Shown in pieces: positions 7,841 through 64,000 of a stretch of 64,000 nucleotides of DNA. Each line of letters starts with the position of its first letter. Positions within the stretch are counted from its first letter, which is position 1. The notes under the pieces are model-generated. The model ran no database searches. It saw only the letters and a list, made by a program, of their open reading frames with translations, and had not been told where the DNA came from. Both the position numbers and the translations under genes were made by a program. Origin of the DNA: Piromyces finnis finn (Eukaryota > Fungi > Neocallimastigomycota); assembly GCA_002104945.1 (NCBI GenBank), contig MCFH01000049.1:186001-250000 (forward strand). The letters are read 5' to 3'.

Positions 7841-7873
<33 letters not shown>

Positions 7874-20066: not shown

Positions 20067-22329
20067 TCATTGTGAAGTACTACTTGTGAAAGTACCATTA
20101 TTTAGAGTATTACTATTTTTACTATTTATTGATAGTCTATTTGATTCATTTTCTTTCCTTTTCTTATGTATTTTTTTTAAATTTCTGAATGCTGTTAGTA
20201 TTAATACAAATAATATAATGGCGATTACTATGATGACTATGTATAATATGCTAAATTTCTTCATTGACGGATTACCCATAACATTTCTTTTGAATAAAAA
20301 TATAAATTAATTTTTTATATGATTAATGAATACATTATATACATTATATATAAAAATAATTACATTGTTATATTTAATTTCTTGACTTCTTTTGGTATAG
20401 AACCACTTAATTTATTATTATTTAATAATCTTTTTTTTTTTTTTTTGAAGAAATAGGATAATTAGTAAAAAAGAAAATAAAATTACTTTATTATAATCAA
20501 TAATAGAATGATAAAAGCTAATTACAATGATTTTAAATTTGATAATTTTCCAAGTTCAGGCGGTATAGAGCCAGTTAATTCGTTTCTAGATAAATTTCTA
20601 TTTATGTAAAATGATTAAATAACAATAAAGATGATTCCAATAATAATATTTATTAAAATTAGATTTTTATATATAAAATATATAAGATTTTTATTTACAA
20701 TGTTTCTAATTTAGATAGATTTCCTAGTTCAGGTGGTATAAATTCACTAAATTTATTATCTGACATGTTTCTATTTCATTAATTCATATAGGAAAAAGAA
20801 TTCTTTAATAACCAATATCATTTCAGAGTTTATTATAATATTTAATACAATAGTTTTAAAGTTAAAAATTACAATGTTATTAGTTTCGTAAAATTCCCAA
20901 ATCCAGGTGGTATAGAGCCAGTTAATTCATTTCTTGATAAATCTCTATTTATAAAAAATATTTAATAATATTAAAATGATAATAATCAATAATCAATAAT
21001 CAATAATCAATAATCAATAATCAATAATCAATAATCAATAATCAATAATCAATAATCAATAATCAATAATTAATAATGAAATATTTAAGTAATAATTACA
21101 ATTCTTCCAAATTTAAAAGTTTTCCAAATTCAAAAGGTATTACATCACTTAATTTATTTTGATTTAACATTCTTTCAAATAGAAATAATAAATTAATAAT
21201 AAATATTATACATATATATTATAAACTGATATTTTAATTAATTACAAATGTTTTAATTTTGTTAAATTTCCTAACGAAGAAGGAATTGAACCTGTTATTT
21301 GACAATTAAATAATTCTCTTTTTTTTTTTTTTTTTTTTTTATAATTAAAATAAAAACTTATTAATAAAACAATACATTGACTATTCTTTAAATTAATATA
21401 TGATATTTAATAAAAATTATACAATTCTTCTAATTTAGACAAATTTCCAAGTTCAGGTGGTATTGGATCAGAAATAATACCATTTTGTATTTTTCTATTT
21501 CGTAATAACAAAAAAGAATGGGTTTAAATATGTATAATAAAATTTATTATTAATAAAAATAAAAAATATTTTATTAATTACAACTGTACTAAATTTGATA
21601 ATTTCCCAAGTTCAGGCGGTATAGATCCTTTTATATTATTTCCATTTAAATATCTTTTTTTTTTTTTTTATCAAAATAAATAAATGATAATAAAAACAAT
21701 AATAAAAACAAAAAATAATTAATACAATAATATTTAAAATAATAAAATGGTATATAATAGTTACAAGTATTCTAAATTTGTTAAATTTCCGAGTTCCGGT
21801 AGTATATAACTATTTAAATGGCATAATTAAAACTTTTATTAATATATACGATAATAGTAATAATGATAATAATAATTCATTACAAATATTTTGAGCTAAT
21901 TATATTTCCCAGTTCATTAGAGTCAGAAAGTATTAATTTATCTGTAGTTAATTGACTTTTTTTTTTTTTTTTAAAAAAATTGTAATATATTTAATTTAAT
22001 AATGTGGTAAATGAAATATCTTATAATTTATTTCAATTATGTTTCTTAACTACACAATTCTAGAATATAACTTGACAATTTTATATGATATCTACTCTAG
22101 ACTAATAAAATCTCTGAAATTGAATTAAGAACTAGTTTATATTTTTATTTAAAATCTTTTATTATTACATTTTAGAGACATGACCATTTGTACATGTAAT
22201 TCCTTTTTCTGAACAACAATCATCTGATTGCTTTTTACCTAATAATTTATTTATTACATCACAATCATTTTGGGCACAAGTAAATCTTAGTATGGTAATG
22301 ATATTAATTAATAAAATTAATATATTCAT
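20067..22329 (-). CDS. LRR receptor-like protein 1 (signal, Cys N-cap, 9 LRR exons, cap exon, TM, Ser/Asn-rich tail)
   Basis: Exon 1 22329-22169 reads MNILILLINIITILRFTCAQNDCDVINKLLGKKQSDDCCSEKGITCTNGHVSK. Then a divergent 72-nt exon (21955-21884), a 45-nt half repeat and seven 72-nt exons (e.g. YLNGNNIKGSIPPELGKLSNLVQ), a 66-nt cap exon, and a last exon overlapping ORF 20067..20279 (TM ILYIVIIVIAIILFVLILTAF). All introns are phase 2 GT-AG. Confidence 0.85.
20981..21070. repeat. (AATAATC)n heptamer repeat in an intron of LRR gene 1
   Basis: About 12 tandem copies. Confidence 0.9.
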
Positions 22330-22567
22330 TATTAAGTATTATTAATATTTATATAAAATAAAAGTGGAGGAATATTTATTTTAACATTTAATAGTTGTAA
22401 ATAAAAAATTTGGAAAAATAAAAAGTATGAAAGAACTCTTAAAGTTTAACCATTAAAATACTTTTTTTTTTTTTTTATAATTAAGATTAGAAAGAAAAAA
22501 GTTTAAATACTTTTATAAGACTTTAGTATTGAACGTTATTTATTATATTTTTTATTTATTACTTTTC

Positions 22568-22598
<31 letters not shown>

Positions 22599-23036
22599 TT
22601 TTAAAGTGAAAAAAAAAAACTTAAATTTTTATGGACAGTTTCAATAAAGATCATTACCATGGAAATATTAAAGTATTAATGTAGAAATACCAAAAGTTAA
22701 CCTGGGAGAAGTTAAAAAAAAAAAAGAAAACCAAAACAAAATCATTTTTTTATTAATAAAAAAAATTAATAATTTAAAATGAATACTTTTTTTTAAATAG
22801 ACTTGTAGACTTTATTTATCATATTCAATATTTACTTTTTGTATTTTATAGTTAGTTTACATTAATAGCATTTATATATAAATCATTGATAGAAATAAAT
22901 AATTTATAAAAGTATTTTAATTTTATGAATATTAATGTATTAATAGCATTAGTTGTAAATAAATTATTCAGATAATTAATTTATTATTATTATTATTATT
23001 ATTATGAATATTATTATGAATGATGTAATTAAGGAA

Positions 23037-25762
23037 TCAACTTTCACTAATGACAGATTCTTCAACATCAGCAAAAGTATTGACAAAAGCATGTCTTACA
23101 GAAACGGATACTTCATGATTATTGTTTATATACTTTTTTCCTTTTTTGTTTTTCCGGAATATTTTTATATATATTATTAATAGAGTTAACACTACAAATA
23201 TTATACTAATGATCAATAGAGTAATTAATAAGTTGTTATTATCCACGTTTAGTAATGGATTATTGGAAATAAACCTATCGAATAAAATAAAATTAATAAA
23301 ATAAATTATTATTAAAATATTGTTAACATATGAATAATAATGAATATTTAAAAATGTATTTCAACTATACTTGATAAATAATATTTATAAAATTATATGT
23401 AAATAGATAAGTATTATAAAGTTATATATAAAAAAGAAAATTTTAATACAATTTTATATTTAGATTCTTTATTTCTTTTGGAATAGAACCGCTTAAATTG
23501 TTGTTTGATAAAGAACTATTTTGAAATAAGAAATAAGATGTGTTAATATTTAAATAATCTATGATATATAACATATATAACATATATATATCTGTAAATT
23601 ATATGCAATTATAGATAAAAGTATGAATTAATATAAATATTGAAAAATTCATTACAGAGTTTTTAATTTGGATAGATTCCCAAGTTCAGGTGGTATTGAA
23701 CCCGTTAAATTATTATTATTTAAATATCTACAAGATGTAATGTGTAATATATTTTTAAAAAATAAAATTAAAAATTAGATAAATCGTAGTAATTATATAA
23801 TTATATATTTTGAAATAATATTTAAAAATAAATTCAATATATTGCTTATATACATTTTTTTTAAGTTAGACAAATTTCCAAGTTTAGATGGTATAGAATC
23901 AGTTAAAGTATTATTAGATAAATGTCTAGTATAAATAAAATGAAATATTTATGGTATTTTTAGTATTTATATAATAATTATTATAATATTATTTTACAGT
24001 TAGAGAAGGAACAAAATTAATTATTAATATTCATTACAAATATTCTAAATTAGATAAATTCCCAAGCTCAGGAGGTATGGAACCAGTTAGTTTATTATTA
24101 GATAAATCACTATTTTTTCAAAAAAAAAAACAGTAATGATATAAATGATAAAAGTTATTATGGATAACATATAATTTTTCATTATAATCATTAATAAATA
24201 GATTATTACAGAGTATTTAAATTTGATAATTTTCCAAATTCAGGTGGTATTGAACCCGTTAATTTATTATCTAATAATTTTCTATTTATATGCAAGATAA
24301 AATCCTTAATATTAATACTATACTACTACCATTACTATTATTAATAATAATGATGATAAAAATTCATATTTATGAAAATATATAATCTTTAAGTAATTAC
24401 AATATTTCTAGATTTGATAAATTCCCAAGTTCAGGTGGAATGAAACCGGTTAACGTATTAAGATTTAAATGTCTTTTTCAAATATAAATAATTAATATAA
24501 ATAATTAATATAAATAATTAGTTATTTAATATTGTTTATTACAAGATATTTTTAATTTTAATATTTATTATTTAAAAATAATTACAATGTCGTTAATTTT
24601 GAAAGATTTCCAAAAGAAGAAGGAATAGATCCTGAAAAATTACAATGACCTAAATGTCTTTTTTTTTTTTTTTTTTAAATAGAATAAAAAATAATTAAAT
24701 ATCAATAAAATAAATTTCATAATATTAACATTTGAAATTTAAATAGTATTTTAGGTTATTACAGCATTTCCAAATTAGATAATTTTCCAAGTTCAGATGG
24801 AATAGCACCCTTTAGATTTTTTCCATTCAATTTTCTATTTCGAAAAAATAAATAAAAAAAGAATTATAATAAATATAGAAAATAACTTTTATCTTTTCAT
24901 TAATATGATTAATTATAATAATTACAAATATTTTAAATTAGATAAATTTCCAAGTTCAGGCGGAATAGAACCAACTAAATTATTTCCAGTTATTTCTCTA
25001 TTTTAAAAATAAAATTAGCAATGATAATAATAAATTTAATGATTTTTTTTTAATAATTGTATTTATTATTGTTTTTACATATGTTCTAAATATGTTAAAT
25101 TCTCAAGTTCAGGTATTAAATAACTATTTAAAAATATATAATATAATTAGAATATTTATTATTTGATATAATAGATAATAGTAATTATAATGAAGTAGTA
25201 TTAAAGTATATTTGATTTTTACATATCTTTTGCTTTGACTATTTCTTCTGGATCATTAGTAATTCTATTATCTGTATAATAAATTCTTTTTTAATAAATG
25301 TTAGTAATAAATATTTAATTTATCTATAATATATATTATTTTGTTTTGGTATTTAAAATACAAAATTATAACAATTTTATATAGAAAATTTTCAATTTAA
25401 TTCTTAGAATTAATATGAACTTTTATTATCATTCTTTTTATGTTATTTTATTAATTCTTATGAAAAAACATATGTATATATCATTTAATTCAGAAATTTA
25501 TTTTGGTTATAATACACCAATATAATGATAACATGTATTTCTTAATGAAAAATTATATAACAAATTTTATAGTTCCAATTCATTACATTTTAATAATATG
25601 ACCATTCATACACACAACTCCCAATATTGAACAACAATCACTTGATAAATTTTCATTTAAAAATTTATTTACTATTCTACATTCTTCTATTATATTGTTT
25701 TGGGCAGAAATAATAGTTATTATTATTATAAGAATATCAATTAATAAAATAAATAAATTCAT
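23037..25762 (-). CDS. LRR receptor-like protein 2 (10 LRR-type exons, cap, TM, AFVNTFAD tail)
   Basis: Exon 1 lies within ORF 25583..25810 (MNLFILL...DCCSILGVVCMNGHIIK). Then 63- and 45-nt divergent exons, eight 72-nt exons between about 25.0 and 23.65 kb, a cap exon (SLSNNNLSGSIPKEIKNLNIK), and a last exon overlapping ORF 23037..23246. Confidence 0.87.
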
Positions 25763-26628
25763 TTTTTTTAAATTTTTAAATAATATAAATCGAAAAAATT
25801 TTATTTTCATTAAGCAATTTTGTATATTTAATATTATATTAAAAATATCAAAAATTTAAAAAACTTATATAAACTTTATCTTTACTATATTTATAAATTT
25901 TAAAAATATTTATTTTAAAAAGTAAAATTTTTATATAGAAAATTTAAAATTATGAATATTAATGAAATAGAACTATTTAATCTAAAATAAATAAAAATCT
26001 CCAATTATAAAATATTTCATTGATAAGTATAATGCTTAGCTCAATTAATAAGGATAGATGAATTAATATATATCCTAGATTTTTGGCGATTTATCTTAAT
26101 ATTACTTTTTATTGTTGACTATTAAGTGTGTAATAACAATAATAAGTTTTCTTATATAAAATAATATTTAATATTACAGGATAATTACTATAAAAACTTT
26201 CTTTACAAAGCATTTTATTATTTTTATATTTTTTTAATATTAATTATTCTTTATAAATTTAAATAACTTTCAATTGAAATTTATGAACTTATTGTGAAAC
26301 TATTACATTTTTAAATATATGTAAAATTTGATACTTTTATAGTATTTTATTGAATTTATAGTACTTTATATTTATAATAGAATAGTAAACCGAGAGAACA
26401 TATTTTTATTGTTATTATTATATTAATGCTATTTCATTTAATTTTGTTTTTCGAATTTTTAATATATGATTAAACGCATTTATGTTAAAAAAAACTAGTA
26501 TTAACATTAAATATTTTGAGAATATTATTTTGTGTTAAGGGCATTAATTGTTAATAATAATATTTCTAGTTTCTAGTTGTAAAGAATGTAATTCTCTTTT
26601 TATTTTATTATGGATATTGTATTCTATT

Positions 26629-28982
26629 TTATGGTATTTCACATCCACTAATCATCGAATCATCTGCAAAAGTATTTACATAAGCTTGTTTTGTTGAAAT
26701 ATGATTGTTATAATATGTATTTTTTCCCCCTTTTTTGTTTTTCCTGAATATTTTTAAATATATTATTGAAAATAATATAATAGCAAACGATATACTAACC
26801 ATTAATATTATAATTAATGCAGTATAACTATTTTCAGTATCCAATAATGGATTGTTTGATGTATATCTATTAATAAAATAAAATACAATATATAATAATT
26901 AAAAACGAAAGAATTTTAATTATATTACATAAACTTTTTATATATAAAAAATAATGTAATTACAAATTTATTTTTAATTTCTTTATATCTTTTGGAATTG
27001 AACCACTTAAATTGTTGTTAGATAAAGATCTATTTTAAATAGAAAATAAAATAAAAAAAAGTATGAGAATTAAATAATTAATATATTTCACTATTATTGA
27101 TATTATTGATAATATATAAATAATAACTAATTACAAAGTTTCTAATTTTGACAAATTTCCAAGTTCAGGTGGTATAGGACCAGTTAAATTATTATAAGAT
27201 AAATATCTATTCCCAAATTAAAATATTTTTTTAATAATTATTATAATAATTCCATATTTGTGTTATATTTTTATTAAATTAAATCATATAAAAGATAATT
27301 ACAATGATTTTAAATTTGTTAATTTTCCAAATTCAGGCAATATAGGTCCTGTTAGTGTATTGTTAGATAAATTTCTAATTTAATTAAAATAAAAACTTAA
27401 TAATAAATATAATTAAATCTACACAATAAATATATTATATAAAAAAAGATTACATATATTCTAAGTTTGATAAATTCCCAATACTTGAAGGTATATCATC
27501 ACTTATATTATTTTTATTTAATTGTCTATTTTAGATAAATATAGAAAATTTTTAATAAAAAAAATATTATATATATTTTATTATAATTAACATTTAGTAT
27601 TATAAATTTAATTACAAATTTTTTAAATTTGATAAGTTTCCAAGCTCTACCGGTATAGAACCATTTAATTTATTATTTAATAAGTTTCTTTTTAATGTAA
27701 AAATAATATATATTTAATAATATAAATAAAAAAATATTTAATAGCAGAATGTTTAAAATAATTTAAAATAGTTACAGTAACTCCAAATTAGATAATTTTC
27801 CAAGTTCAGATGGTATAAAATTGCTTAAATTGTTTCCATATAAATAACTATTTTAAATAACGAATTAATTTAAAAATTTAAAAATATGTTTAAGAATTAT
27901 ATGTAAATTACAGATTTTTTAAATTTGACAGATTTCCTAGAGAAGAAGGAATAGAACCAATAATATTACTACTATTTATATTTCTTATATATACATGAAT
28001 AATAATATTATTAATATGTGATATTTTAAATTTAAAATTATATTATACGAATTACAATTCATTTAATTTTGATAAATTTCCAAGTTCAAATGGTAAAACA
28101 CTACTTAAATGCTTTCCTTGTATAAACCTATTATAAATAATAAATTATTTATTTATACTACTATTACTACTATTACTACTACTAAAAATAATAATAATTA
28201 CAAATAATTTAAGTTTGTTAAATTTCCAATTTCAGGAGGTATATGACCAATTAACCCATTTCCACTTATATACCTATTACATGATATTAAATGATTATTT
28301 TTTATATTCTTATATATAAATGAATAATAATATATTTTTTTTATTACATAAAATTTAGATAAGTTATATTCCCGATTTCAGGTGGTATAGAGGCATAATA
28401 ATTTTCAATAATTAATTGTCTATTTTAATAAAATAATATAATATTAATAATGAACATATAAAGTAATATATACATGATTGTAAAATGATTATTTTAATTT
28501 TATTATAATATTATTAAGATATAAAACCATTATAATTATTATTTAAATTTATAATTCATATTATAATATGTATTTTATAGTATGAAAACATAAAATATTC
28601 ATAAGAAGTACAAACATAAGTGTTTTTATAATTGAAAACTTTTATTTTTTTTTAAGTTTATAAAAATATAACTATCCATTTATTGAATATAATTTATTAT
28701 CTGTATCCTTATCCTTATATATTTAAACCTTTAGAACTTTTTTATAAATATTATAAAAGCTTTATATTAATAAAATAAATAATTATCGATTCATTACAAT
28801 TTAATGATATGGCCATCACTTGAGCATACAATACCACTTTCTAAACAGCAATTGTTTGATTGAATATTTAATAATTTATTTACTATATCACACTCATTTT
28901 TGATATTATTTTGTGCAGAAATGAATTTTAAAATAAATATAGAATTAATGTGAAAAAAGAGTATTTTCATTTTCATTTTCAT
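26629..28982 (-). CDS. LRR receptor-like protein 3 (9 LRR exons, cap, TM, AYVNTFAD tail)
   Basis: Exon 1 is ORF 28794..28982. Nine 72-nt exons lie between about 28.4 and 27.1 kb, then a cap exon at about 26.96-27.03 kb and a last exon overlapping ORF 26629..26844. Confidence 0.87.
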
Positions 28983-29549: not shown

Positions 29550-30120
29550 TAGTAATACTAATAGGAGGATGCTTTTTTTGAGCTACAAGATATCATATTA
29601 CATTCTTATTCTTTTTTCAATTTCCTCGTTAATAATTTTCTTTTTATGTACTAACATATAGATAAAATTATAATATATACTCCTAAAATTGAATAATTAT
29701 TAATAACTTGGTATTATTTTAAATAGTGAGATAATAAATCTTTTTATATTTAATTTAAAAATAAAAGGCAATGATTTTTTTATATACAAAATAAAAATTC
29801 TTATTTACACTTGAATTCATTATATTTAAAGAAATTAGCAAAAAAAAGTAATTACAACTCTTTTTAAATATAAAAATAAAAATTTTAATGATGAATAAAC
29901 TATATAAACACATATTTTCTTCACAATGTATAATATTTATAGTATTTTTGATTTAATTCTGGTAACTTTCTAAGTTCGGGTGGGGTATAAGTCTAATTAA
30001 TTTATTTCAAAATAAATTAAACAATTTAATTATTAATATTAATAAGATATTTACTATATTTTTCTAATATAGATAAATCTCAAAGTTCAAGGAAAATAGA
30101 ACTTACTAAATAACTTTAAT
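29550..30120 (-). pseudogene. Decayed remnant of an LRR receptor-like gene
   Basis: Broken LRR exons near 30060-30120 and 29950-30000 (PPELRKLPEL). A frameshifted TM/tail exon at 29550-29730 ends in ISCSSKKHPP, homologous to SFGSKNHPP. Confidence 0.6.
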
Positions 30121-30452: not shown

Positions 30453-32361
30453 TTAAGTAATACAAACAGGAGGATGATTTTTTGAACCAAAAGATATTTT
30501 ATTTTTATTTCTACTGGAAATTTCTTCTTCAACAATTTTCTTTTTTGTTTTTTTATATGCTATTGTTATTCCTGTAGCAAGGATTAAAAAAAGTGCAATA
30601 ATAATCAGAATACTTATTACTGAATTATTATTACTTTCTGTTTCTAATAATGGATTATTTGATATATATCTTTTTATTATAATAGGTATAAAATTTAAAA
30701 TAAAATTAATATTTAAATGCTTTTATTATTATATATTTACATAAATAAATGAAAAGTAAAAAAAAATTTACAGTTTCGTATTTAATTTCTTTATTTCTTT
30801 TGGAATTGAACCACTTAAATTATTTCTAGATAAATATCTATCATAAATATTAAATTAGGTGTTTTAATAATAAATTAATCATAAAACACATATTTTCTTT
30901 TTATTTTATAATATTTATGATAAATGCATAATTCATTACAAAGATTTTAATTTTGTTAACTTCCCAAGTTCAGGTGGTATAGATCCAGTTAAATTATTCC
31001 CGGACAAATCTCTATTTATTTAAAAATAAAATATTAAATTTTTAACATAATCATTATTTTCATGTAATAATAAATAATAATTATCATTGAAGTAATTATC
31101 ATTGAAGTAGATTTAATTACAATATTTCTAAATTAGATAAATTTCCAAGTTCAGGAGGAATAGTACCATTAAAGTTGTTTCCATTAATTTCTCTATTTCA
31201 TATATTTAAAACGAAAATGAAAAGTTTCAATTATAATATATTGTAAATTTGAAAAATAAAAATAGATTTTGAAATGTTAATTACAATATTTTTAAATTAG
31301 ATAAATTTCCAAGTTCAGGCGGTATATTACCACTAAAATTATTATCCTGAATTTTCCTATATATGATTAAGAAAATAATTTATATAATTAAATAAAATAA
31401 TTGTAATATATAATAAAATATAATATTTAAATACAGCGATTCCAGGTTTAATAAATTCCCAAGTTCAGGAGGTATAAACCCGCTTAACTTATTATTTGAT
31501 AATACTCTTTTAAGAGAAAATAATAAATTATAAATAATATATTTTTTAATAATAATTATGAACTAATTAATTATAATTAATTACAATTCTTTTAATTTTG
31601 TCAAATTCCATAATGAGGAAGGAATTGAACCTTTAAAAATATTATTTGGAAGACTCCTATTCCAATGTAAAATAAATATTAATATATATAAATTTTTTAA
31701 TAATATTTTATTTATTATTTACAAATTCTCTAATTTTGATAAATTTCCAAGTTCAGTTGGAATTGTTCCATTTATATATTTTCCTTGTATGAACCTAATT
31801 AAAGATATAAATTAAATATAATTTTTCTTCTATAATAAAATAATATATTAATATAATTACAGATAAACTAAACTTGTTAATTTCCCTAGTTCAGGTGGTA
31901 TAGGTCCAATTATGTTATCTCCATAAAAATATCTTTTTCAAGTAATATATGAATAATTAATACGATATAATGTCATATTTAAAAATAATATATTTAATTA
32001 CAAAAACTCTAGATTACTCAAATTTCCAAGTTCAAATGGTATAGAACCACAATAAGATTGACTTTGAAAATATATTTTTCTTATAAAGGTATTTTTTTAA
32101 ATAAAATTTGATAATTGTATATAATATTATTAAAATTTAAATTATATAGATAATATTAACTATTCTTTTTATTCATTACATTCTAGTTATATGACTATTT
32201 AAACATGTAATTTTTTCATTTCGACAACAATTATATGATGATTCCTTATTCAATAATTTATTTAAATAAATACATTCTTCACTTTCTTCACTAGTATTAT
32301 TTTGTGAATAAATATATTTTACTGAAATAAAGATAGTAACTAAAAAATAAAGTATATTCAT
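30453..32361 (-). CDS. LRR receptor-like protein 4 (8 LRR exons, cap, TM, SFGSKNHPP tail)
   Basis: Exon 1 is ORF 32176..32361. One 78-nt and seven 72-nt exons follow, then a cap exon. The last exon reads YISNNPLLETES...KKIVEEEISSRNKNKISFGSKNHPPVCIT*. Confidence 0.87.
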
Positions 32362-33286
32362 TATTTATTTGGGGGTTTATAATTATAAAATTAATTATAA
32401 AATAAATCAAATTAAAAAAAAAAAAAACATAAAATTATTTTTATTATTATGTAAAAATTAAGACTTTTAAAGTTAATGAAACTCTTTTAAATATTCCTTT
32501 ATGTAGAATTGAAGAAAATAATAAAAGTATTAAATATAAAAAACAATAACAGTAAAAAGAAAATATAAAAATAAAATATAGTTATTATAAAGATATTTTT
32601 ATTAACATAATTATTATCATACATATTTATCATAACGAATAATTATCATTTCTATTTAAAAAATTGTAATAACTTTAAAAATTATAATACATTATACTTA
32701 CACTTAATATTACTTTGCAAAAAATATAAACCTTAATATAGAAATGTAATATGGAAAAAAAATATATATAAATAAAATAGCATTTTATAAATATTAATAT
32801 ATTTAAACTATTTTAATTTTTTTTTTTTAATTCTAAAATGCATTAAAAATAATTGTTTCTTCAAGAAAGAATTTAAATTAAAATAAAGAAAGAATCTATA
32901 ATTTTTAAATAAATATTTTAAAGGTACAAAAATATTCCTCTGATTTATCTTAATAATAATAGATAAATATTTATTTAAAAATATTGAAAAACTGTAAAAT
33001 TAAATATAAATTATAATAATAAACTACAAACTAGTACTTGAGTATATTATAAAAATTTATTTTATATTTTTAAATAATTTATAATAAATAATTTATCTAT
33101 ATATAAATATCATTATTCTATTTACAAAGTTAAACTATTAAGAAAATAAATAAATAATAAGAAAATATAAATGAAATAATATTTTTAAGTTTATATTTTA
33201 CTTTGAAAAATTTTATCAATACATTTATTTATAAAACTTAGTACAATAGTAATTTTATTTCTACAAAGTATTGATTTATGGATAAA

Positions 33287-35285: not shown

Positions 35286-36221
35286 AATCTATTGACCTTT
35301 TAGTATTGAAGTAATTTAGATTTTGTTTCAAACTATCATTCAATAATTCTTTTAGTTGCAAAAAAATGGTTTTAATTAATTGTTTTATCTTTTAAGTTTG
35401 CAAGTGAAATAAAAAAAAAATTATAAGTAATAGACAAACAAAAATAAAAAAAAAGGTAAAATATATTTAAAATAAAAAATATTAAAGTTCATTATATAAA
35501 TATTTTTAAAAAAACTAATTTTTATTTAAAACATATAAAATTATTAATATTGAAATTATTATTAACATTTAGTTTTTAAAGTTTTTATAAACTATTTAAT
35601 GGAATAATAGGTATTACTAATTTATTCGGTAAATTTTATTTTATTAATACTATATATATTGGATAATTTTTTTTTTGAAACTTTAAGTATTTAATTATTC
35701 CTCTAGCTACAATTTATCAATTGTAATATTATCAATATTTTTTTTTATTTTAACATAAAGATGCATCTAATATTTAATATATTTTATTTTAAATATTATC
35801 ACTACAATAATGATTAAGTATTTATAAAGATCCATAAAAAAATTACTTATTTAAAAATATGATAATTTCTATATGAATATATATATACATTATACATTTT
35901 AAATATCTTATTAATAATATATTCTAAAAAAAATAAATATGATTATCAATATAATTATTAGTAATGCGTTAATTCTATTCTCTATATTGTATATATTAAT
36001 ATACTATCATATACTTAATAATCAGTAATAAAAATGTAATAAAATAATATTATAAAGAAAAAATATAATATCTTACATTCGGAAAATAATATATACTACT
36101 TAAACTTTAATAATGTAAATATCTTTATTATTTTAAAGAATTATACAAACTTCTACTACCTTATTGAAAGTTTTTTTTTTTTTTCCTAATAAAGAAAGAT
36201 TCAATTATATTTAAATCAAAA

Positions 36222-42781: not shown

Positions 42782-42824
<43 letters not shown>

Positions 42825-47371: not shown

Positions 47372-47409
<38 letters not shown>

Positions 47410-48806: not shown

Positions 48807-51412
48807 TTAATTAATATATACAGAAGGATGATTTTCTGAACCAAAAGATATTTTATTTTTTTTCTTTCTTTCCTCTTCTTCTTTTATAATTTCCTTTTTT
48901 GTTTTTATATAACCAATGACTATTGTTACAAGTAGAATTATAAAACATACTCCAAAAATTAGAATAACCATTAATTTAGTATTTTTTTTCGTTTTTAATA
49001 ATGGGTTATTTGACATATCTCTTTATATTTAATTAAAAAAAATTAATTTTTTTATATATATTAAAAAATAAAAAAATTATATTTATAATCCTATTATCTT
49101 ATTTATAAATAAATATAAAAAGATTAATTACAAATTCTTTATATTTAATTTATTAATTTCTTTTGGAATTGAACCACTTAAATTATTGTTAGATAAAGAT
49201 CTATTTAAAAAAAAAATACAAAAAAATAAATAAAAAATAAATTAATTAATTATATATAAGAATAATATATATATTTTTCCTATACATTTTATATTGAGGA
49301 TTAATTACAAGGTTTTTAATTTTGACAGCTTTCCAAGTTCAGGTGGTATAGAATCAGTTAAATTATTATTTGATAAATCTCTAATTTATTTAAAAATTAA
49401 ATTTATCGATTTTTAAAAATAATTGTTATTCTCATGTGAAAATAAATATTATATAATTGGTATTTTCAACAAATATTTGGTTTATAATTAATTACAGTCT
49501 TTCTAATTTAGATAAATTTCCAAGTTCCGGAGGAATGGAACCTACCAAATTATTATGATATAAATCTCTAACAATTTATAATAAAATAATAATAATTAAT
49601 ATATGTGTTATAGTATAATATAGTGAAAATGTTATATAATATATTATTTATGCTATTAACAGATATTTTAATTGAGATAAATTTCCAAGTTCAGGAGGAA
49701 TGGAACCACTTAAATTATTTGTATCTAATTCTCTATTCAAATAATTATGAAAAGCTTTAATAATAAATAATATAAAGTAATAATTGCAACAATAAAAAGA
49801 TAAATATTAATTACAATGAGTTTAGATTTAACAAATTTCCAAGTTCAGGTGGAATAGTACCAGTTAATTCATTCATGGATAATTCACTTTTTCAAGGTAA
49901 AATAAAACATATGTTAATAATTTGTAAAATTATTATTATTAAATATTATAGAAAATTATAAAGTACAGTCTTTCCAAGTTTAGTAATTTTCCAAGTTCAG
50001 CTGGTATTGGACCATTCAAAATATTTTGATTTAACATTCTTTTTTTTAGAAAAATAAAAAAATTAAAAAGAAATACAGTTTTATTCATATATTTAATTTT
50101 TAAAAGGTATATATATATTTTAAAGTTTATTACAATTGTTTTAATTTTTGTAAATTTCCAAATGATGAAGGAATTGAACCTGTTATATTACTTACAGGAA
50201 ATCCTCTTTTATTGAAATGCAAATTTTTATTAATATAAAAAAACTAATACACTTTCATATATTACAATGTTTAAATAATTACAAAAATTCCAAATTAGAT
50301 AAATTCCCAATTTCAGTGGGTAAAGGGCCATTCAAATTTCCAGCTATAAATCTTTTATATATATATATAATGAATATAAACTTTTTTCTTTTTTTTTTTT
50401 TTTACAATAATATTGTTTACTTTAACTTTAAAATATTTACAAAGTTTTTAATTTTGTTAAATTACCAAGTTCAGAAGGTATTGAACCAACTATATTATTT
50501 CCTGATAAATATCTGTTTTAAAAATTTTAAGAATTGAATATAATAAATATATTTATAATTATTGCTTTATTTATTATTATATTTTAAATAAAATTTAATA
50601 ATTAATTACAAATATTCTAAATAAGATAATTTTCCAAATTCAGGCATAGACCCTTTTAAATTTATATTATTATCTGAATGATAATAATATCTATTTAAAT
50701 AAAAATTATAGGTAATATTAATATAAAATAAAAAGGACAAATAAATCAATTAAAAGATTTTAAAAATATTTAAATTTATGGTTAATAAAATAATACTGCA
50801 ATATCATAAGGTAATATTAAATAATAATTAACTAGTTGTCATCATTGTTTGATTTATAACATTTAATAATATACATAAAGAGATGTACTATAAATTTTAT
50901 AATTTTATAATTGTATATTGAAAGGAAATTTTATTGTGTTAAATTACAAAATTACAATATCCAATATCTTAAAGTTTTATTATTTTTTGTTTAAAAGGTA
51001 AAATATATATATATATTTTAAAATAATAAATTTTATTATGAACTATTATTTTGATAACCTTTAAAAAAAAAAAAGTAAAAATAACTATAAGTAGATGGTA
51101 TAAAGGATAAAAGCTTTCTTCTTTTTAAAATTTGCTCTAGTACTACTATTCATAAAGAAATATACAAACAATAAACTTATATATTTTTTTTAATGATAAA
51201 TAACAACAACAATAATAAAAAACTCTTTACATTCTAGTTATATGGCCATTTAAACATGTAATTCCTGAATATTGACAACAGTTATACGATGGTTCTTTAT
51301 TCAATATTTCGTTTATATAAATACATTCGTCACTAGTATTATTTTGTGCATAAACAAGTTTTATTAGAATAATAATGATAGTAATTAATAAAGTTAAAGG
51401 GTTCATTATCAA
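48807..51412 (-). CDS. LRR receptor-like protein 10 (9 LRR exons, cap, TM, SFGSENHPS tail)
   Basis: Exon 1 is ORF 51227..51412. Exons of 81, 72, 69 and 6x72 nt, then a cap exon and a last exon overlapping ORF 48807..49016. Confidence 0.87.
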
Positions 51413-52577: not shown

Positions 52578-54563
52578 TCAATGACTATTAATTATAATAT
52601 TACTAATTACTGGAGTATTACTATTATTATTTGTAGCATATTGTTCTGAAGAAATTGCATTACTTGTACTATTTTCACTATTAATATTTCTATTATTTCT
52701 ATTATCTCTATTATTCAAATATAAATAGAGTTTTGCAAAAATAACTAAAAATATACATATTATAATTGGAGTAATAACAATAAATATATTGCTCGATTTA
52801 TCATTTAATAATGGATTATTATATGTGTATCTATTTGTTATATACAAGTTTATATTATTAAAATTTTAATATACTATATTATTAATATTATAAATATAAT
52901 TACAATTTTATATTTTTTTTCTTAATTTCTTTTGGTATAGTACCACTTAAATTATTATTAATTAATCGTCTAATTTAAATATAGATACATAAATTACAAT
53001 TATTATTATAAAAAATATAACCTATAAATATATAATATAACGTATATGAAATTATGAAATTATTACATGGTTTTAAGTTTTGATAAATTTCCAAGTTCAG
53101 ATGGTATAGGGCCGGTCAAGTAATTATTAGATAAATCTCTATTTTTATACGAAAAGAAATATTTAGTCATGTCATATGTATTAATATAATGTATAAAAAG
53201 ATAATGTTTATGTTTGATATATTATAACTTAGTACAGTTCTTCCAAGTTTAATAAATTTCCAAATTCATGAGGAATGGTACCATTTAATACATTTTGATA
53301 TAAAAATCTTTAAAAAGTTGAAAATAAAAAAAAATTAATAAACTACCAATAACTATATATTATTATTGATTATTTTTAGAAATAATTTGTTAACTATTTT
53401 ACAATTGCTTTAATTTTGATAAATTTCCAAGGGATGAAGGAATTGAACCTGTTAAATGATTTTCAGATAGGTTTCTTTTTTTTTTTTTTTTTTTTTTTTG
53501 AAATAAAATATATATTAATAAAGTAAATAAATACATTTTTCATAATACAAGTCTTTTAATATTTACAATTTTTCTAAATTAGATAAATTTCCAAGTTCAG
53601 GAGGTATAGAACCAGTTATATAATTTCTACTTATTTTTCTATTTCAAATAAAAGTTAAAATATTAATAAATTTAAGTTTAATAAAATAAATGGAATATAC
53701 ATAGGATAATCACAAATTTTCCAAGTTGACTAAATTCCCAAGTTCAGGTGGTATTGCACCTTCAAGTATATTTTGTTCAAAATTTCTTTCAAATGAAAAT
53801 ATTTTAATTATTATTAAATTGTGTATTATAATTTTTCATTTTTTTTTTAAAAAAAAAAGTTATCAACATTAAATTACAAATTCTTTAAATTCGACAAGTT
53901 TCCTAATGAAGAAGGAATTGAACCTGTTAAATAGCATCCATGGACTTTTCTTTTTTTAAAATTATGTAATAAAATTTAATCATTAATGAAGAAAACAAAT
54001 ATATATATTTCATAAATAATATTTAAACAATTACAATTCTTCCAAATTAGATAAATTTCCAAGTTCAGGTGGTATTGAATCATATATATATTTTCCTTGT
54101 ATATATCTATTTAATAATATTAAAAGAGAAATATAATAAATATATAAACTTTTAAAATACTACTTTTATTTAAAAAAAATAGTACAAATATTTTAAATTC
54201 GATAAATTGCCAAATTTAAATTTAACTATTTTTTATATATAAAAGAACCCACTTCAAAATATATAAAAATATCTTTTTTTTTTCTATAAAAATTTAACAT
54301 GGTATTGATTCGCATAAAATAAAATATTCGTCATGTTTATAACGTAATTATTTAAAAAGTTAAATTCATTACATTTTAATGATATGACCATTTGAACATT
54401 CAATTTCAGTATCTGAACAACAATTATATGAAGGATCTTTTTTCAATAATTTATTTATAACATCACATTCTTTATTATCTCTTTTTTGCTGTTGCTGTTG
54501 TTTTTGGGTATAAACACATTTTACTATAATAATAAAACTAACGAGTAAAATTAATATATTCAT
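52578..54563 (-). CDS. LRR receptor-like protein 11 (7 intact LRR exons, cap, TM, Asn/Ser-rich tail)
   Basis: Exon 1 is ORF 54369..54563. A damaged second exon lies near 54185-54250. Seven 72-nt exons between about 54.1 and 53.07 kb, a cap exon and a last exon overlapping ORF 52578..52847. Confidence 0.83.
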
Positions 54564-56157: not shown

Positions 56158-59100
56158 TTAATTCCAACAAATACCATATTTTCTTTGACATTTTTTATTG
56201 TGACTGCAGTAACTACTAGTAGTTCCACAGAATCCTTCTTTACTGCAACATTGACCTTCAGGACATGATCCCCATGATCTACCACATCTCAATTCACATT
56301 TATTTTTTTGGACACTACCAGAACATGTTCTTTCAAGTACGAATACATTTTATTTTTAGAATATATTATGTTTATATTAATATATTTTTATATTGAAATT
56401 AAAATATATTCAGTTATAAAAAATTAGAATATTATAAAATTTAGTACTATTCTCCAGAAAATGAATAAATTTTTTTATATTGACTTACATTTCATTTCCA
56501 TTTTGTAAACTCTTATCTTTTATATTTTCACAGTCAATGCAATTATAAGATACATCACTAATTATATGTTATTATTTTTTTATACATATTTTTATAGTTT
56601 AGTCATGATATTTACTATTAATATTAATTTATAGTATTATAATTTATTCTACTAATTTATATTTACAATGTAGTAAAATTAGTTAGATTTTCAACATCAG
56701 GAATAGGTCCACTTAAATTATTATTTGATAAATCTCTATATATTATTATAATTTATTTAATGTAAAAAAATATATAGATAGATTATTATTAAGATATATT
56801 ATAAATCCTTGTTAAAATTATGATAGCATAAAAATTTTTCTCTTACAAAATGATAAGTTCAGACATTTTTTCGATAGTTGAAGGAATTTTACCAGTTAAT
56901 TGATTGTTATTTAAATATCTATTTAATTTAATTATTCATCAATAAAATAGTTAATAAATAATAATTCTATTTTTATTTTAACTCTATAAATTATGAATAT
57001 ATTTAATATTTACAAATATTTTAAATTAGTCAAATTTCCAATTTCCGAAGGAATTTCACCAGTCAATTGATTATCTTCCAAAAATCTATTTAATTCATTT
57101 ATTAATTAATATTTAAAAGTCAAAATTATTTTTAATTTTAATTATAAAACTTTTTTAAATATTTTTAATATTTACATATCTTGTAATAAAGATAATTTTC
57201 CAATAGTTGAAGGAATTTTACCAGACAATTGATTCTCCATGAAATATCTATTTAGTTTAATGAATAAAACTTAGTTATTTTAATTTCTTATTTCAATTAT
57301 TGATATTTTTAATAATTTCAATATTTACGAATGTTGTAATGAAGATAAATTTCCAATGGTTGAAGGGATGGAACCTTTCAATTGATTATTATTTAACCAT
57401 CTAATATAATTTATTTAATATTTTATGAATAAAATAATACTCTTTATTTTTATCAAATAAATAATAAATATTTTTTAATATTTACATGTCTCGTAATGAA
57501 GATAATTTTCCAATTTCTGAAGGGATTTTTCCAGTTAATTTATTCCAAGCTAAAATTCTATTTTAATTTAATTATTTTTTCATCAATAATTTAACAAGTA
57601 AAACTTTTTTTTATTTTTACTTTAAATATAAAGAATTTTAATATTTACAAACGTTGCATATTAGTTAATTTTCCAATAGTTGAAGGAATTTCACCGGTCA
57701 ATTGATTATCGCATAAAATTCTATTCAATTCATTCATTAGTATTAAAAATCTTTTTTTTTAATTTCATAAATAAATATTTATAATATTATTAATATTTAC
57801 AAAACTTTTAAATTAGATAAATTTCCAATAACAGAAGGAATAGTTCCTTTTAATTTATTAGAATTTAACCATCTATATAATATAGTTATTCATTAATATT
57901 AATATGTAAAAAAGTATTTTTTTTATTTTTATTATTTTAATTATAAATATTCTTACAATTCTTGTAAATTTTTTAACTTTCCAATAGCCGAAGGAATTTC
58001 ACCAGTTAATTGATTAAAATTTAAATATCTATTTAATTATTCATTAATATAATGGTTAATAAGTAATGATTCTATTTTTTATTTTACCTCTATAAATTAT
58101 AAATATATTTAATATTTACAAATATTTTAAATTAGTTAATTTTCTAATAGTTGAAGGAATTTCACCAGTTAATTGATTATCATCTAAATATCTATTTAAT
58201 TCATTCATTAATTCATAATTTAGTAAATTAAAAATTTATTTTAATAATTATAAAAGTTATAAACACTCTTAATATTTACAAATATTGTAAGGCAGATAAA
58301 TTTCCAATTTCTGAAGGAATGGTTCCAGTCAGTCTATTTTTATCTAAATGTCTATTTATTAACAAAATATTTAATGAGTAAAAAAATTTTTAATTAATTA
58401 TATAAATATTTTTAAAATTTCAAATATTTACAACCAAACTAGTTTTTTCAAATTTCCAATAGTTGAAGGAATGGATCCTTCCAATTGATTAGAATTTAGC
58501 CATCTAATATATTAATTAATATTTAATGAATAAAAATTATTTTTTATTTTGATTATATATAAATTATAAATGTTTTTAATATTTACATTTCATATAATTC
58601 ATGAAGGTTTCCAATTTCTGAAGGAATTTTTCCAGTTAACTTATTCCAAGCTAAAGCTCTATTTTAAGTTATTTTTATTTTTATCATAATATAATAAGTA
58701 ATTTATTTTTTTATTTTTACTCTTTTTATAAATATTTTTAGTATTTTCAATATTTACGAATGCTGTAAATTGGTTAAATTTCCAATAGTTGAAGGAATAG
58801 ATCCAGTTAATTGATTACTATCTAAATATCTATTTTATTTATTTTGTTTAATAAGTAAAAAGTTATTTTTATTTCAATTATAAAAGTTTTAAATGCTTTT
58901 TAACATTATTAATATTTACAACCAAATTAATTTAGTTAATTTCCCAATTTCTGAAGGAATGGATCCAGTTAATTTATTACTATTTAAATATCTATTTAAT
59001 TTTATTTATTCATTAATATAATTAGAAAAAAAATTATTTCTATTTTTATTATAAATATTTTTAATATTTTTCAATATTTACAATTCTTGTAAATTTTCTA

Positions 59101-59633
59101 AATTTCCAATAGTTGAAGGAATGGTTCCTGTTAATTGATTACCACTTAAAAGTCTATTTTTATTTTGTAATAATAAATATTTGATAAGTAAAAATTATTA
59201 ATTAAAAAATTATAAATACTTTTATAATTATTAATATTTACAAAATTCTTAAATTGGTTAAATTTCCAATAGTTGAAGGAATTTCACCAGTTAATTGGTT
59301 ATCACTTAAGACCCTATTTAAATTTTATTTATTCATTAATGTTTATTGAGTAAAAATAAATTTTATTTTATTTTATTTTATATTATATTATATTATTAAA
59401 AAATATTTTTACATTTCGGTGATTCGACCATTCTCACATGTAATGTATTGATAATTATCACCTCTAATATTGCAACAATTAGCAACAGAATATTTTTGTT
59501 TCCATAAACTTTCAATAGCTTTACAATCGTTTGGTGCTGTTTCTTCATCACGTTTTGATAATTTGTCAATGGAATAAGAAAGTGAAGTGCTAGACACTGT
59601 CAAAACCAAACCTAAGAACCTAGACAGTCTCAT
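56158..59633 (-). CDS. Secreted LRR protein with C-terminal hevein-like chitin-binding domain (CBM18); 16 LRR exons, no TM
   Basis: Exon 1 is ORF 59409..59633. Sixteen 72-nt exons (consensus xLxxNQLTGxIPSxIGNLTNL), a 69-nt cap exon and a 69-nt exon (DVSYNCIDCENIKDKSLQNGNE) follow. Last exon 56329-56158 reads TCSGSVQKNKCELRCGRSWGSCPEGQCCSKEGFCGTTSSYCSHNKKCQRKYGICWN*, matching the hevein pattern CG...C...CCS..G[FWY]CG....YC. Confidence 0.88.
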
Positions 59634-61768: not shown

Positions 61769-61848
61769 AATATTTCCAAACTAAACAAGTTTCCTAATTC
61801 GAGTGAATAAATCTAACAATAAAAGTAAAGGAAGAAACTCGGTTTGAT
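61769..61848 (-). pseudogene. Orphan degenerate LRR exon
   Basis: AG...GT-bounded segment ending LELGNLFSLEI, with a frame disruption in its 5' half and no intact gene around it. Confidence 0.45.
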
Positions 61849-62197
61849 CTATTTTAATTCAATTGCTTTAAATAAACTCATTTTAGCTTAATAGTTTTGT
61901 GTTTATTTTTGTAGCTTATTCTACTATATATTATTTTTATTTATTTTATATACATTGTTTTACATTTAAATTCTGTATCTTTTAATTATTTAAAAAAGAA
62001 AATAGTTATCAAGTAACACTTTTCTTTTTTAAACTTTTAATATTATTATTTATTTTAATAATTAATTTTATTATAACAATACAATAATATTTCATTATAT
62101 AATAAATAAATTATTGAACAAAAAATATTCATTATTGTTTAAAAAAATATACATTATTAGAAATATGATAGTTTTGTATAATATTATTGCTAAAATT

Positions 62198-62470
62198 TTA
62201 ATTTTCACTTAATATTGATTCATCCTCAAATGTATTTACAAATGCATTTCCTGTGGAAATTGGTGCATTATTATTCATGTTATTAGTTCTTTTTTTGTTT
62301 TTCCTGAATACTTTTAAATATATTATCACCGATAACAGAATTATAAATACACTACCAACAATTAAAACGACAATTAATGAATTATAACCTTTATTAGTTT
62401 TTAACTGTGGATTATTAGAAAAATAACTTTTTATAAAAAAATATTGTTATGTACAAATTTTATATTAATA

Positions 62471-62551
<81 letters not shown>

Positions 62552-64000
62552 TAAATTTACAATTTTATATTTAATTTCTTGATTTCTTTTGGTATGGAGC
62601 CAGTTAAATTGTTATAAGATATAGATCTATTTTAAAATAAAAAACATATATAATTTATTAATTATTTTTTATATAATAGTTAAAAAAAAATCATATCAAT
62701 AATAAATATTTTTTTACAAAGTTTTTAATTTTGACAAATTTCCAAGTTCAGATGGTATAGAGCCAGTTAAACTATTATGTGATAAATTTCTTTTAAATAA
62801 CGACGATAATTAATATTATTAATTGAATATTATTTTTAAATAAATACATATTGATATATTAATTGAAAATAATTACAATTTTTTTAAATTATATAAATTT
62901 CCAAGTTCAGGTGGTATTGAATTGCTTAAATGATTTTCAGCTAAATTTCTATTTTTTTTTAGAAAAAAAAAAAATAAAATAAAAATATGACTTAATATTA
63001 AATATTATTAATTATTCTGTTAGAATAAAAAGTATAAGAGTATATAAAAGCAAATACAAATTCTCTAAATTTTTTAAATTTCCAAACTCAGGAGGTATAC
63101 CACCACTCATATTATTTGAATCAATTTCTCTTTAAATATATATATATAATAAATATATATTTTTAATATGTGAAAATTCGCTTTCAGAATAATTAATAAA
63201 ATATGTTAAGAATTGTTTACAAAGAATTTAGCTTCGAAAGTTTTCCGAGTTCAGAAGGTATTGAACCATTAAATTTATTTACAGATAAATCTCTAATTTA
63301 AAATAAAATAATAATAATAATAAATTAATAATTAATAAGTTAATATAAATGTATTATTAAATTAAATATATATTCAAATAATTACAATAATTCTAAATTT
63401 GATAATTTTTCAAGTTCAAGTGGAATAGGACCACTTAATTTATTTGCATTTAAATGTCTATTTCAAATGAAAATTAATAATTAGCAATAATAAAATATAA
63501 TCTTTTTATTTATTATTTCAGATTAGTTACAATGCTTTTAATTTTGATAATTTTCCCAAAGAGGAAGGGATAGTACCGGTTATATTACTAACAACAATTG
63601 ATCTTTTTAAAAAAATACATATATATAATTAATAAAGGTGAATTATATTTTTAATACGACAATATGTATATCTAGACAAACATACAATTCTTCTAAATTA
63701 GATAAGTTTCCAAGTTCTGGTGGTATTGAACCACTTATTCTCTCTCCTTTTATTTGTCTTTTTTTTAAATAAAAAAAAATTATAATAAATTTATATAATA
63801 TTTTCTAATATTTATGTAACAGTAATATTTATTATAATAATTACAGAAATGTTAAATTTGATAAATTCCCAATTTCAGGTGGTATAGGACCAAGTAATTT
63901 TAATGAATCAATATGTCTGTTTCAAATAATATTAAAATGGCCATTAATATATGTATTGATTTTTTTTTCTTTTTTCTTTTCTAATAATAAAAATATTTTA
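62198..64000 (-). CDS. LRR receptor-like protein 13, 5' part outside window (at least 8 LRR exons, cap, TM, AFVNTFED tail)
   Basis: Eight 72-nt exons between about 63.91 and 62.72 kb, then a cap exon. The last exon reads YFSNNPQLKT...LIVVLIVGSVFIILLSVIIYLKVFRKNKKR...GNAFVNTFEDESILSEN*. Confidence 0.85.
62466..62551. repeat. (AAT)n microsatellite in last intron of LRR gene 13
   Basis: About 28 AAT units. Confidence 0.93.

Follow-up and report, generated by a model that had tools for sequence, protein, structure and literature searches.

A cluster of leucine-rich-repeat genes in Piromyces finnis

The window analysed here is a 64,000-nucleotide stretch of the genome of the gut fungus Piromyces finnis. 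Between positions 20067 and 63916 it carries 13 leucine-rich-repeat (LRR) genes, all in one orientation on the minus strand. They belong to a cluster that numbers 18 genes on contig C177; there is a second cluster, of at least six genes. Models were spliced locally to check frames, to compile exon statistics and for a single comparison with fetched proteins; searches were run with single exons or with public protein identifiers. The features are as follows.

20067–22329, minus strand: gene 12 (gene 1 of the first-pass annotation); first exon with signal peptide and Cys cap, then 10 LRR exons, of which one has 45 nt, and a last exon encoding the membrane helix and the tail; no internal stop
23037–25810, minus strand: gene 11; 12 exons, 10 of them LRR; tail of type '..AFVNTF..'
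26629–28982, minus strand: gene 10; 12 exons, 10 LRR
30453–32361, minus strand: gene 9; 11 exons, 9 LRR (the first of 78 nt); tail end of type '..ISFGS.NHPP.CIT'
30768–31340, minus strand: tract of 573 nt in gene 9 attributed to gene conversion; four exons with introns
33287–35285, minus strand: gene 8 (gene 5 of the first-pass annotation); colinear duplicate of gene 9, frameshifted
33791–33863, minus strand: 73-nt LRR exon of gene 8; one-base insertion at 33832
38056–40303, minus strand: gene 7; 12 exons, 10 LRR (the first of 69 nt)
40864–41900, minus strand: gene 6; 5 LRR exons and a terminal exon only
42960–45064, minus strand: gene 5; 11 exons, 9 LRR (one of 75 nt)
45703–48104, minus strand: gene 4; 13 exons, 11 LRR
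48807–51406, minus strand: gene 3; 12 exons, 10 LRR, including 81 and 69 nt
52578–54563, minus strand: gene 2; 10 exons, 8 LRR
54188–54214, minus strand: relic of a decayed LRR exon within the first intron of gene 2; its sole acceptor leaves it out of frame
56161–59633, minus strand: gene 1; signal peptide and Cys cap followed by 18 LRR exons of consensus G-x-IPS-x-IG; last exon with a hevein-type chitin-binding domain; membrane helix absent
62198–63916, minus strand: gene 0; 9 LRR exons and the terminal exon within the window, first exon outside it at C177:250387

Despite a G+C content of 16%, neither the ten complete models nor the incomplete genes 0 and 6 contain an internal stop. Gene 11 probably starts at its second ATG (25762). 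Gene 6 is probably a 5'-truncated copy, since no signal-peptide/Cys-cap exon was found upstream of it. Gene 8 would be functional only if splicing leaves out its 73-nt exon or if the additional base is an artefact of the assembly.

One repeat per symmetric exon

The full gene models hold 128 LRR exons, from 5 to 18 per gene, and 105 of these are exactly 72 nt long. The other lengths are 66 nt (nine exons), 69 nt (eight) and 45 nt (two), with single exons of 75, 78, 81 and 73 nt. AG/GT borders are found throughout, with a phase-2 intron on either side: each LRR exon consists of one nucleotide, whole codons and two further nucleotides, and the flanking introns cut the first Leu codon of the xxLxLxx motif. 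The split codon is TT, CT or AT plus A or G, and mostly encodes Leu. A mechanical search for stop-free phase-2 stretches of the form AG–72 nt–GT with a G-x-I-P motif returned 94 on the minus strand, one on the plus strand and 0–1 in composition-preserving shuffles (n = 20).

The introns are short (62–140 nt) and contain 11% G+C; the first intron of gene 3 reaches 540 nt. Their donors are uniform and close to GTAA[AT]T, and the acceptor is mostly AATAG or AAAAG.

The exon anatomy proposed in the first-pass annotation is thus confirmed: one LRR per symmetric phase-2 exon, mostly of 72 nt; an intron placed within the conserved Leu codon; the 73-nt exon, present in the assembly, as the lone frame-breaking length; and, the exons being symmetric, the possibility of gaining, losing or exchanging single repeats in frame. 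Its repeat counts per gene have to be revised: each was one too low, and that of the gene credited with 16 repeats two too low, terminal LRR exons of 66 and 69 nt having been omitted.

Predicted proteins and repeat consensus

Nine complete models encode, in a single frame, a signal peptide, an LRR ectodomain, one membrane helix and a short tail, the signal peptide and helix being called by eye from the sequence. This receptor-like plan is not found in gene 1, with its chitin-binding end, in the frameshifted gene 8, or in gene 6, which has no first exon; gene 0 starts beyond the window. Terminal exons encode the helix and 30–60 residues without a kinase match, and the tail motifs had no Pfam match. 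At 56164–56328, gene 1 scores 29.2 bits for Pfam Chitin_bind_1 (hevein/CBM18), above the gathering threshold of 27.8.

Across 105 exons the consensus reads xLxxNxLxGxIPxELGNLSNLxx, to which the split Leu is added; it is that of the plant-specific (PS) LRR class, whose 24-residue unit is LxxLxLxxNxLxGxIPxxLGxLxxLxx. Five residues (I11, P12, G16, L18, L21) are fixed in 94–98%, and the entropy of positions 1, 3, 4, 6, 8 and 23 amounts to 2.5–3.7 bits; variation is highest at the exposed residues of the concave face. The contrast drawn earlier between some eight variable first residues and a fixed IPPELGNL is roughly right, but positions 2, 5 and 7 are conserved as L/I, N and L, and P13, E14 and N17 are fixed in just 49–72%.

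In Pfam, single window exons gave only weak matches to LRR_1, and LRR families match relatives of the window genes. The plant N-terminal cap model LRRNT_2 (PF08263) had no match at E up to 1 in the four first exons searched; the conserved cap found there is of another kind, C..CC..C.NGH. The solved structures nearest to a family member, P0041, in a search with that protein, are the plant ectodomains of GSO1, FLS2, MIK2, PEPR1 and BRI1.

From their sequences, the products are predicted to be type-I membrane proteins of a receptor-like or adhesin-like kind, without a kinase, plus one secreted chitin-binding protein. They would reside at the cell surface and bind ligands through the concave face.

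Distribution and origin of the exon layout

Throughout the P. finnis genome there are at least 1027 candidate LRR exons, and all 150 that were scored had E below 1e-6. Of the 283 repeats at 20 further loci, 207 occupy exact 72-nt phase-2 exons. The same intron place recurs in publicly available models from P. finnis (ORX42340.1), Piromyces sp. E2 (OUM56380.1) and Chytriomyces sp. MP71 (KAI8615718.1). The last of these species, a free-living chytrid, agrees with the gut fungus in its Cys cap, in its repeats and in having the membrane helix and the same intron place. Models deposited in GenBank as 'L domain-like protein' from Neocallimastigomycota (ORX42340.1, OUM56380.1, ORY54091.1) belong to the same family and share its exon layout, as unnamed paralogues or orthologues; our literature search found no paper on the family or its gene structure.

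Outside the fungi, the closest likeness is to rice group 5 and to the ERECTA-type LRR kinase genes of 23–27 exons (Sun and Wang 2011, PMC3050792). In rice LRR-kinase genes the exons measure 72 nt, and phase-2 introns interrupt the first Leu of xxLxLxx; 81, 78, 75, 69, 66 and 45 nt occur as minor exon lengths (PMC3050792). The 24-residue repeat, the exon per repeat, the phase, the split Leu and the minor lengths are all shared with the genes of the window. We rely on this published survey for the plant layout because the two plant loci that we fetched, P0199 and P0203, are intron-poor. Plant LRR kinase genes also have the signal peptide, the Cys cap and the single membrane helix. In contrast to them, the gut-fungus proteins lack a kinase and end in tails of 30–60 residues, their cap scores below Pfam LRRNT_2, their host is a fungus, and their introns are of 62–140 nt with 11% G+C.

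Plant LRR-RLPs and PGIPs share the extracellular plant-type LRR, and the RLPs also the membrane helix, the short tail without a kinase and the arrangement in tandem clusters. Introns are few in most RLP and PGIP genes, unlike in those of the gut fungus.

Could the family have been taken from plants by gene transfer, introns included, rather than inherited within zoosporic fungi? The repeat type is plant-specific, plant ectodomains are the nearest solved structures, rice LRR-kinases agree in the place and phase of the intron and in exon lengths, and the fungus lives on plant matter. However, bacterial proteins of the same repeat type score equal to plant ones: a word-index protein search with P0131 was dominated by long LRR proteins from bacteria (Bacteroidota T9SS) and from plants, returned no P. 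finnis models and yielded nothing usable on origin. The plant cap model, too, goes unmatched. The same cap, repeats, helix and intron place occur in a free-living chytrid, a shared design which suggests that the family arose earlier than the gut fungi. We therefore consider transfer from plants unlikely, while noting that repeat arrays yield unreliable trees. Inheritance within zoosporic fungi is the reading we prefer.

Germline evolution of the cluster

Several germline events can be read in the cluster. Gene 1 contains a duplication of a 7-exon block, and the introns of both blocks are also related. Genes 9 and 8 share a 573-nt tract that is identical but for one base, while the flanking exons are just 75–83% identical; we interpret this tract as gene conversion between the two. 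Diversification in the germline, as suggested by the first-pass annotation, is real as far as the events go (block duplication, a decayed exon, the conversion tract), but the events are ordinary and exon order is conserved. Of 192 reciprocal best exon pairs between paralogues, 166 (86%) are colinear, whereas 1000 shuffles gave 115 on average and 130 at most; the 26 out-of-order pairs (14%) may reflect either real exchange or noise, the sequences being just 72 nt long. Spare LRR cassettes were found neither in the introns nor in the spacers of the window, which hold three decayed relics only.

For these reasons, the idea of a cassette system built into the cluster did not hold up: the layout is genome-wide and extends to other fungi and rice, and no cassette reservoir exists here. 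We think it likely that the cluster is an ordinary duplicating gene family and not an exon-mixing system. The layout would have been inherited with the LRR gene type, being common to a chytrid and to plant LRR-kinase genes. With symmetric 72-nt exons, gain or loss of a single repeat would keep the reading frame, and since such changes would be harmless to it, birth-and-death evolution in the germline would follow from the layout. It would proceed through tandem duplication of whole genes, copying of exons together with their introns, decay of exons, truncation of genes and conversion between neighbours.

Selection appears to act on the proteins. Codons of conserved residues still vary synonymously (pS 0.14–0.39, pN at most 0.06), and because synonymous sites vary while pN stays low, we ascribe residue conservation to protein-level selection, not recent homogenisation. 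The dN/dS ratio is 0.84 at exposed positions versus 0.42 elsewhere and overall not above 1, in pairs picked by similarity and with an extreme base composition. This contrast is compatible with some diversifying selection, and to that extent counts against an ordinary family.

A more dynamic scenario would have exons shuffled rapidly in the germline, between and within genes, with the cluster as an evolving repertoire of binding surfaces. The model for it is found in the ROCO/LRR genes of Ectocarpus and kelp (Zambounis 2012, PMC3341825; Teng 2024, PMC11378527), which resemble the present genes in having an LRR per symmetric 72-nt exon, local exon duplications and a variable concave face. Exon numbers from 5 to 18, the block duplication in gene 1, the conversion tract of genes 8 and 9, the 26 of 192 best matches out of order and the peak of variation at exposed positions would all suit it. 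Yet exon order is conserved well above chance, the sole recent exchange homogenises instead of diversifying, a non-coding cassette reservoir is absent, and exon exchanges would be old, because best matches are mostly just 75–88% identical. In Ectocarpus, by contrast, recent duplicates have their exons in scrambled order and introns contain non-coding LRR exons (PMC3341825), neither of which is seen here. The comparison with Ectocarpus made by the first-pass annotation is less close than that with plant genes. The intron falls elsewhere in the repeat, the algal exon beginning at GxxP and the gut-fungus exon after the split Leu; exon order and intronic exons differ. Moreover, the Ectocarpus proteins are cytosolic ROC-COR GTPases, and ROC-COR is absent from the window proteins. 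Taken together, we give rapid shuffling little chance and retain the ordinary, duplicating family.

Transcripts and splicing

JGI contigs of about 1 kb, without introns, carry whole family proteins and represent spliced transcripts of family members. One metagenome scan found no relatives, another, with the cDNA-derived P0041, gave the same transcript form only, and in one further scan the alignment was too diverse. All exons of the window genes are assumed to be spliced constitutively.

Regulated skipping of single LRR exons would instead give several receptor isoforms per gene, as in brown-algal ROCO. Every internal LRR exon is symmetric in phase 2, so that any skip would stay in frame; leaving out the 73-nt exon would restore gene 8; and transcripts with alternative LRR exons are reported for Ectocarpus (PMC11378527). 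Against this, donor and acceptor sites are uniform and near one consensus, the repeat arrays run contiguously through the cDNA-like contigs of relatives, and the variant scan of one such transcript met the same form only. As a rule, plant genes of the same layout are spliced constitutively. Diversification by splicing thus strikes us as very unlikely, and constitutive splicing remains our reading.

Four sequencing runs from one organism contain 13–26% of the words of window positions 30453–40303; exon-only content would be about 22% by rough estimate, and that the runs are RNA is a guess.

Somatic diversification, in which LRR units would be rearranged as in lamprey variable lymphocyte receptors, or mutated in a targeted way, in the growing thallus, can practically be dismissed: nothing beyond the modular layout and the use of LRR modules as binding surfaces recommends it, the lamprey germline holds only incomplete genes, which flanking cassettes complete somatically, whereas 10 of the 13 genes here are complete and open in the germline and have no flanking cassette arrays but three decayed relics only, and the layout is common to organisms without any such process.

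Implications

The case for a diversity-generating device is weak; what is observed is ordinary gene-family evolution. In a 2010 survey of 49 fungal genomes, proteins combining LRRs with a membrane helix were almost absent, with five genes, gut fungi being then unsequenced (PMC2939053). Roughly a hundred such genes are present in the P. finnis genome, with as many as 18 per cluster, and a chytrid has the same design. With about 100 genes here and that design shared, plant-type LRR surface proteins would form a large family in zoosporic fungi at least.

If, against our expectation (we see only a slim chance of it), exons including the 73-nt exon of gene 8 were skipped, each of about 100 genes would offer several binding surfaces, a splice-diversified recognition repertoire in a fungus. 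Possible ligands in the gut include plant fibre, bacteria, methanogens, and self or mating signals. In Pecoramyces, an 'LRR receptor-like' gene ranked in the top ten for down-regulation in the presence of a methanogen (PMC6414434). Finally, the place of the intron, being identical between fungi and plants, may serve as a marker, distinguishing a very old type of ectodomain gene from a move between kingdoms.

Exon organisation of the LRR genes

Between 20 kb and the end of the window, a motif scan reveals about 100 minus-strand G-x-I-P-x-x-L-G repeats, one roughly every 160 nt. We then searched mechanically for 72-nt segments bordered by AG and GT and stop-free when read as 1 nt, 23 codons and 2 nt. 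The minus strand contains 115 of them, 94 with the motif; the plus-strand control gave 7 (one with the motif), and 20 shuffled sequences gave 1–8 each (0–1 with the motif). Completing these segments by gap filling and adding first and last exons produced 13 co-oriented gene models, here genes 0–12, with 128 LRR exons.

Lengths of the LRR exons (n = 128)
72 nt: 105
66 nt: 9
69 nt: 8
45 nt: 2
73, 75, 78 and 81 nt: 1 each

All 128 exons have AG/GT borders and phase-2 introns on both sides. After splicing, the ten complete models and the incomplete genes 0 and 6 have no internal stop, which in DNA so AT-rich makes a chance origin impossible. The first-pass annotation, which described one LRR per symmetric phase-2 exon of mostly 72 nt, is thus borne out. 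The single 73-nt exon, in gene 8, stems from a one-base insertion in the assembly at window position 33832.

Introns span 62–540 nt (median 91) with 11% G+C, the exons having 26%; donor sites are mostly GTAA[AT]T and acceptor sites mostly AATAG or AAAAG. One intron of gene 12 reaches 155 nt because it contains about 12 units of an (AATAATC)n microsatellite (20985-21075). The codon split at LRR exon borders is TT, CT or AT completed by A or G, mostly a leucine, and corresponds to the first Leu of xxLxLxx. In the established structure of LRRs, this places an exon junction within the coding sequence of each beta-strand, in agreement with the earlier proposal that it is assembled from two adjacent exons.

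Predicted protein architecture

Exon 1 codes for a signal peptide and for a conserved cap with four cysteines, C..CC..C.NGH (alignment A1), for which a Pfam search gave no match to the plant N-cap model; gene 6 lacks this first exon. In complete membrane-type genes, 8–11 LRR exons follow. The final repeat, encoded by a 66- or 69-nt exon, has the form '..NNNLSGSIPKEIKKLN..', and the terminal exon codes for 'SNNPLL', one hydrophobic helix and a tail of 30–60 residues with endings of several kinds, two of them recurrent. The LRR gene models of the window contain no kinase or other signalling domain, and their products are predicted to be receptor-like proteins, not receptor kinases.

One gene has a different end:
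56161-59633, minus strand: gene 1, 18 LRR exons, with a hevein-type chitin-binding domain at the end in place of the helix

This domain scores above the Pfam cut-off for Chitin_bind_1. A paralogue of gene 1 on another contig of the assembly, ORX42340.1, carries two hevein-type chitin-binding domains; both may be wall-bound LRR proteins. In a family member on a 1344-nt JGI transcript-like contig from a metatranscriptome (P0021), the membrane helix is followed by a cytoplasmic MATH (TRAF-like) domain (Pfam MATH_2, 34.6 bits, cut-off 32), which hints that some family members signal.

Distribution in the genome and in relatives

Database queries were restricted to single exons or public protein identifiers, and spliced models were compared locally only. 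A profile of 105 exon peptides (A2) finds 1027 candidate LRR exons, scattered over many of the genome's contigs; the 150 that were scored all had E < 1e-6. Of 283 repeats at 20 other loci, 207 occupy phase-2 exons of exactly 72 nt and a further 43 occupy exons of 66, 69 or 75 nt. In contig coordinates, the present cluster extends beyond the window to 272 kb, totalling 18 genes, and another cluster, with six genes or more, occupies 45–76 kb.

Searching 1.8 billion proteins with an exon 1 profile returned 136 relatives. Those named are 'L domain-like protein' models of P. finnis, Piromyces sp. E2, three Neocallimastix species and Pecoramyces, and one protein of a chytrid, Chytriomyces sp. MP71. 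Several relatives sit on JGI contigs scarcely longer than the coding sequence (P0041, for instance: 295 residues, a 1044-nt contig, four samples). Such contigs are spliced transcripts and show that, in family members, repeat exons are joined in the way the models assume.

One-repeat exons with introns placed as in the window recur in the P. finnis GenBank protein ORX42340.1, which matches its contig exactly, exon by exon, and in Piromyces sp. E2 OUM56380.1 when mapped to genomic DNA. The Chytriomyces gene has exons of 72 or 144 nt and the same intron position, within a CT/gtgagt leucine codon. Its product, KAI8615718.1, comprises two tandem units, each with a Cys cap, LRRs, a membrane helix and a faint SAM-domain match; here the annotation has probably fused two genes. 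The layout had been read as a built-in device of the cluster, a view that does not hold: it is found genome-wide and in public models of relatives, including a chytrid.

Duplication, conversion and decay

Between paralogues, 166 of 192 reciprocal best exon matches are colinear; in 1000 shuffles of exon order the colinear count averaged 115 and never exceeded 130. Identity between best matches is mostly just 75–88%, and together these figures indicate whole-gene duplication with exon order kept. Within gene 1, exon and intron similarity rises at a lag of seven units and all introns form one sequence family, showing that exon-plus-intron units were duplicated. Intron 1 of gene 2 contains a decayed, out-of-frame LRR exon; such decay is probably why several genes have a long first intron.

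Genes 8 and 9 are 75–83% identical in most exons, yet share a sharply bounded, near-identical tract:
30768-31340, minus strand: tract in gene 9, 573 nt
33619-34192, minus strand: tract in gene 8, 574 nt

The sole difference is a one-base insertion, and the tract marks a recent gene conversion.

A six-frame profile search of the whole window picked up just three short relics outside the models and no spare LRR cassettes. This absence speaks against a VLR-like donor reservoir. Two decayed fragments lie in intergenic spacers and are relics of lost exons or genes:
61774-61800, minus strand: decayed LRR fragment
29951-29983, minus strand: decayed LRR fragment

Variable and conserved repeat positions

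Exon-peptide positions 1, 3, 4, 6, 8 and 23 have entropies of 2.5–3.7 bits; they correspond to x in LxxLxLxxN and to neighbouring residues, on the concave face. I11, P12, G16, L18 and L21 are 94–98% fixed while varying at synonymous sites, and are thus kept by protein-level selection rather than recent copying. Exposed positions have a dN/dS ratio of 0.84 and the others one of 0.42, which suggests relaxed or diversifying selection without proving either.

Surroundings of the cluster

The first 20 kb of the window hold typical gut-fungus genes, among other features:
1940-5049, minus strand: ankyrin-repeat ORF run, interrupted by stops or introns
7546-7881, minus strand: (TTAGTA)n-type simple repeat adjoining the LINE-type ORF
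8109-12635, minus strand: LINE-type ORF, 1508 residues, endonuclease and reverse-transcriptase-like
13962-16247, minus strand: intron-less GH48 cellulase with two CBM10 dockerins, 44% G+C amid 16% G+C

The GH48 gene looks like a classic bacterial-derived cellulosome enzyme of gut fungi. From 16 kb onward G+C is about 16%, rising to 22% at 36001-38000, in the spacer of genes 8 and 7.

Comparison with known LRR genes

The brown alga Ectocarpus, proposed earlier as a parallel, also encodes each LRR in a 72-nt exon (PMC3341825; PMC11378527). Its exons, however, start at GxxP and belong to genes for cytosolic ROCO GTPases; even recent duplicates have scrambled exon order, and non-coding LRR exons lie within introns (PMC3341825; PMC11378527). 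Plant LRR-kinase genes are a much closer match: one short 72-nt exon per repeat, with phase-2 introns splitting the first Leu of xxLxLxx, other exons being of 162, 144, 81, 78, 75, 69, 66, 45 and 39 nt (PMC3050792), a layout that the window reproduces even in its minor exon lengths. By its consensus, the repeat belongs to the plant-specific class, and the solved structures nearest to P0041 are plant receptor-kinase ectodomains. G-x-IP-type 24-residue repeats, 45–55% identical to the fungal ones, also occur in the protein-search match list in many Bacteroidota proteins with T9SS sorting tails; the 'plant-specific' class is hence common in bacteria too.

Of the cassette system put forward by the first-pass annotation, what remains is slow germline change by unit duplication, decay and conversion. 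The one-repeat-exon layout itself is best read as inherited; it is plant-like and shared with a chytrid.

Literature searches found no description of this gut-fungus family. The one trace of it that emerged is a gene of Pecoramyces, annotated 'LRR receptor-like', which ranked among the ten genes most strongly down-regulated in co-culture with a methanogen (PMC6414434). In a 2010 survey of 49 fungal genomes, none from a gut fungus, LRR-plus-membrane-helix proteins were almost absent (PMC2939053). Altogether, the interest of the family is modest, and lies mainly in how large a family of plant-type LRR surface proteins occurs in fungi, and in its shared intron positions.
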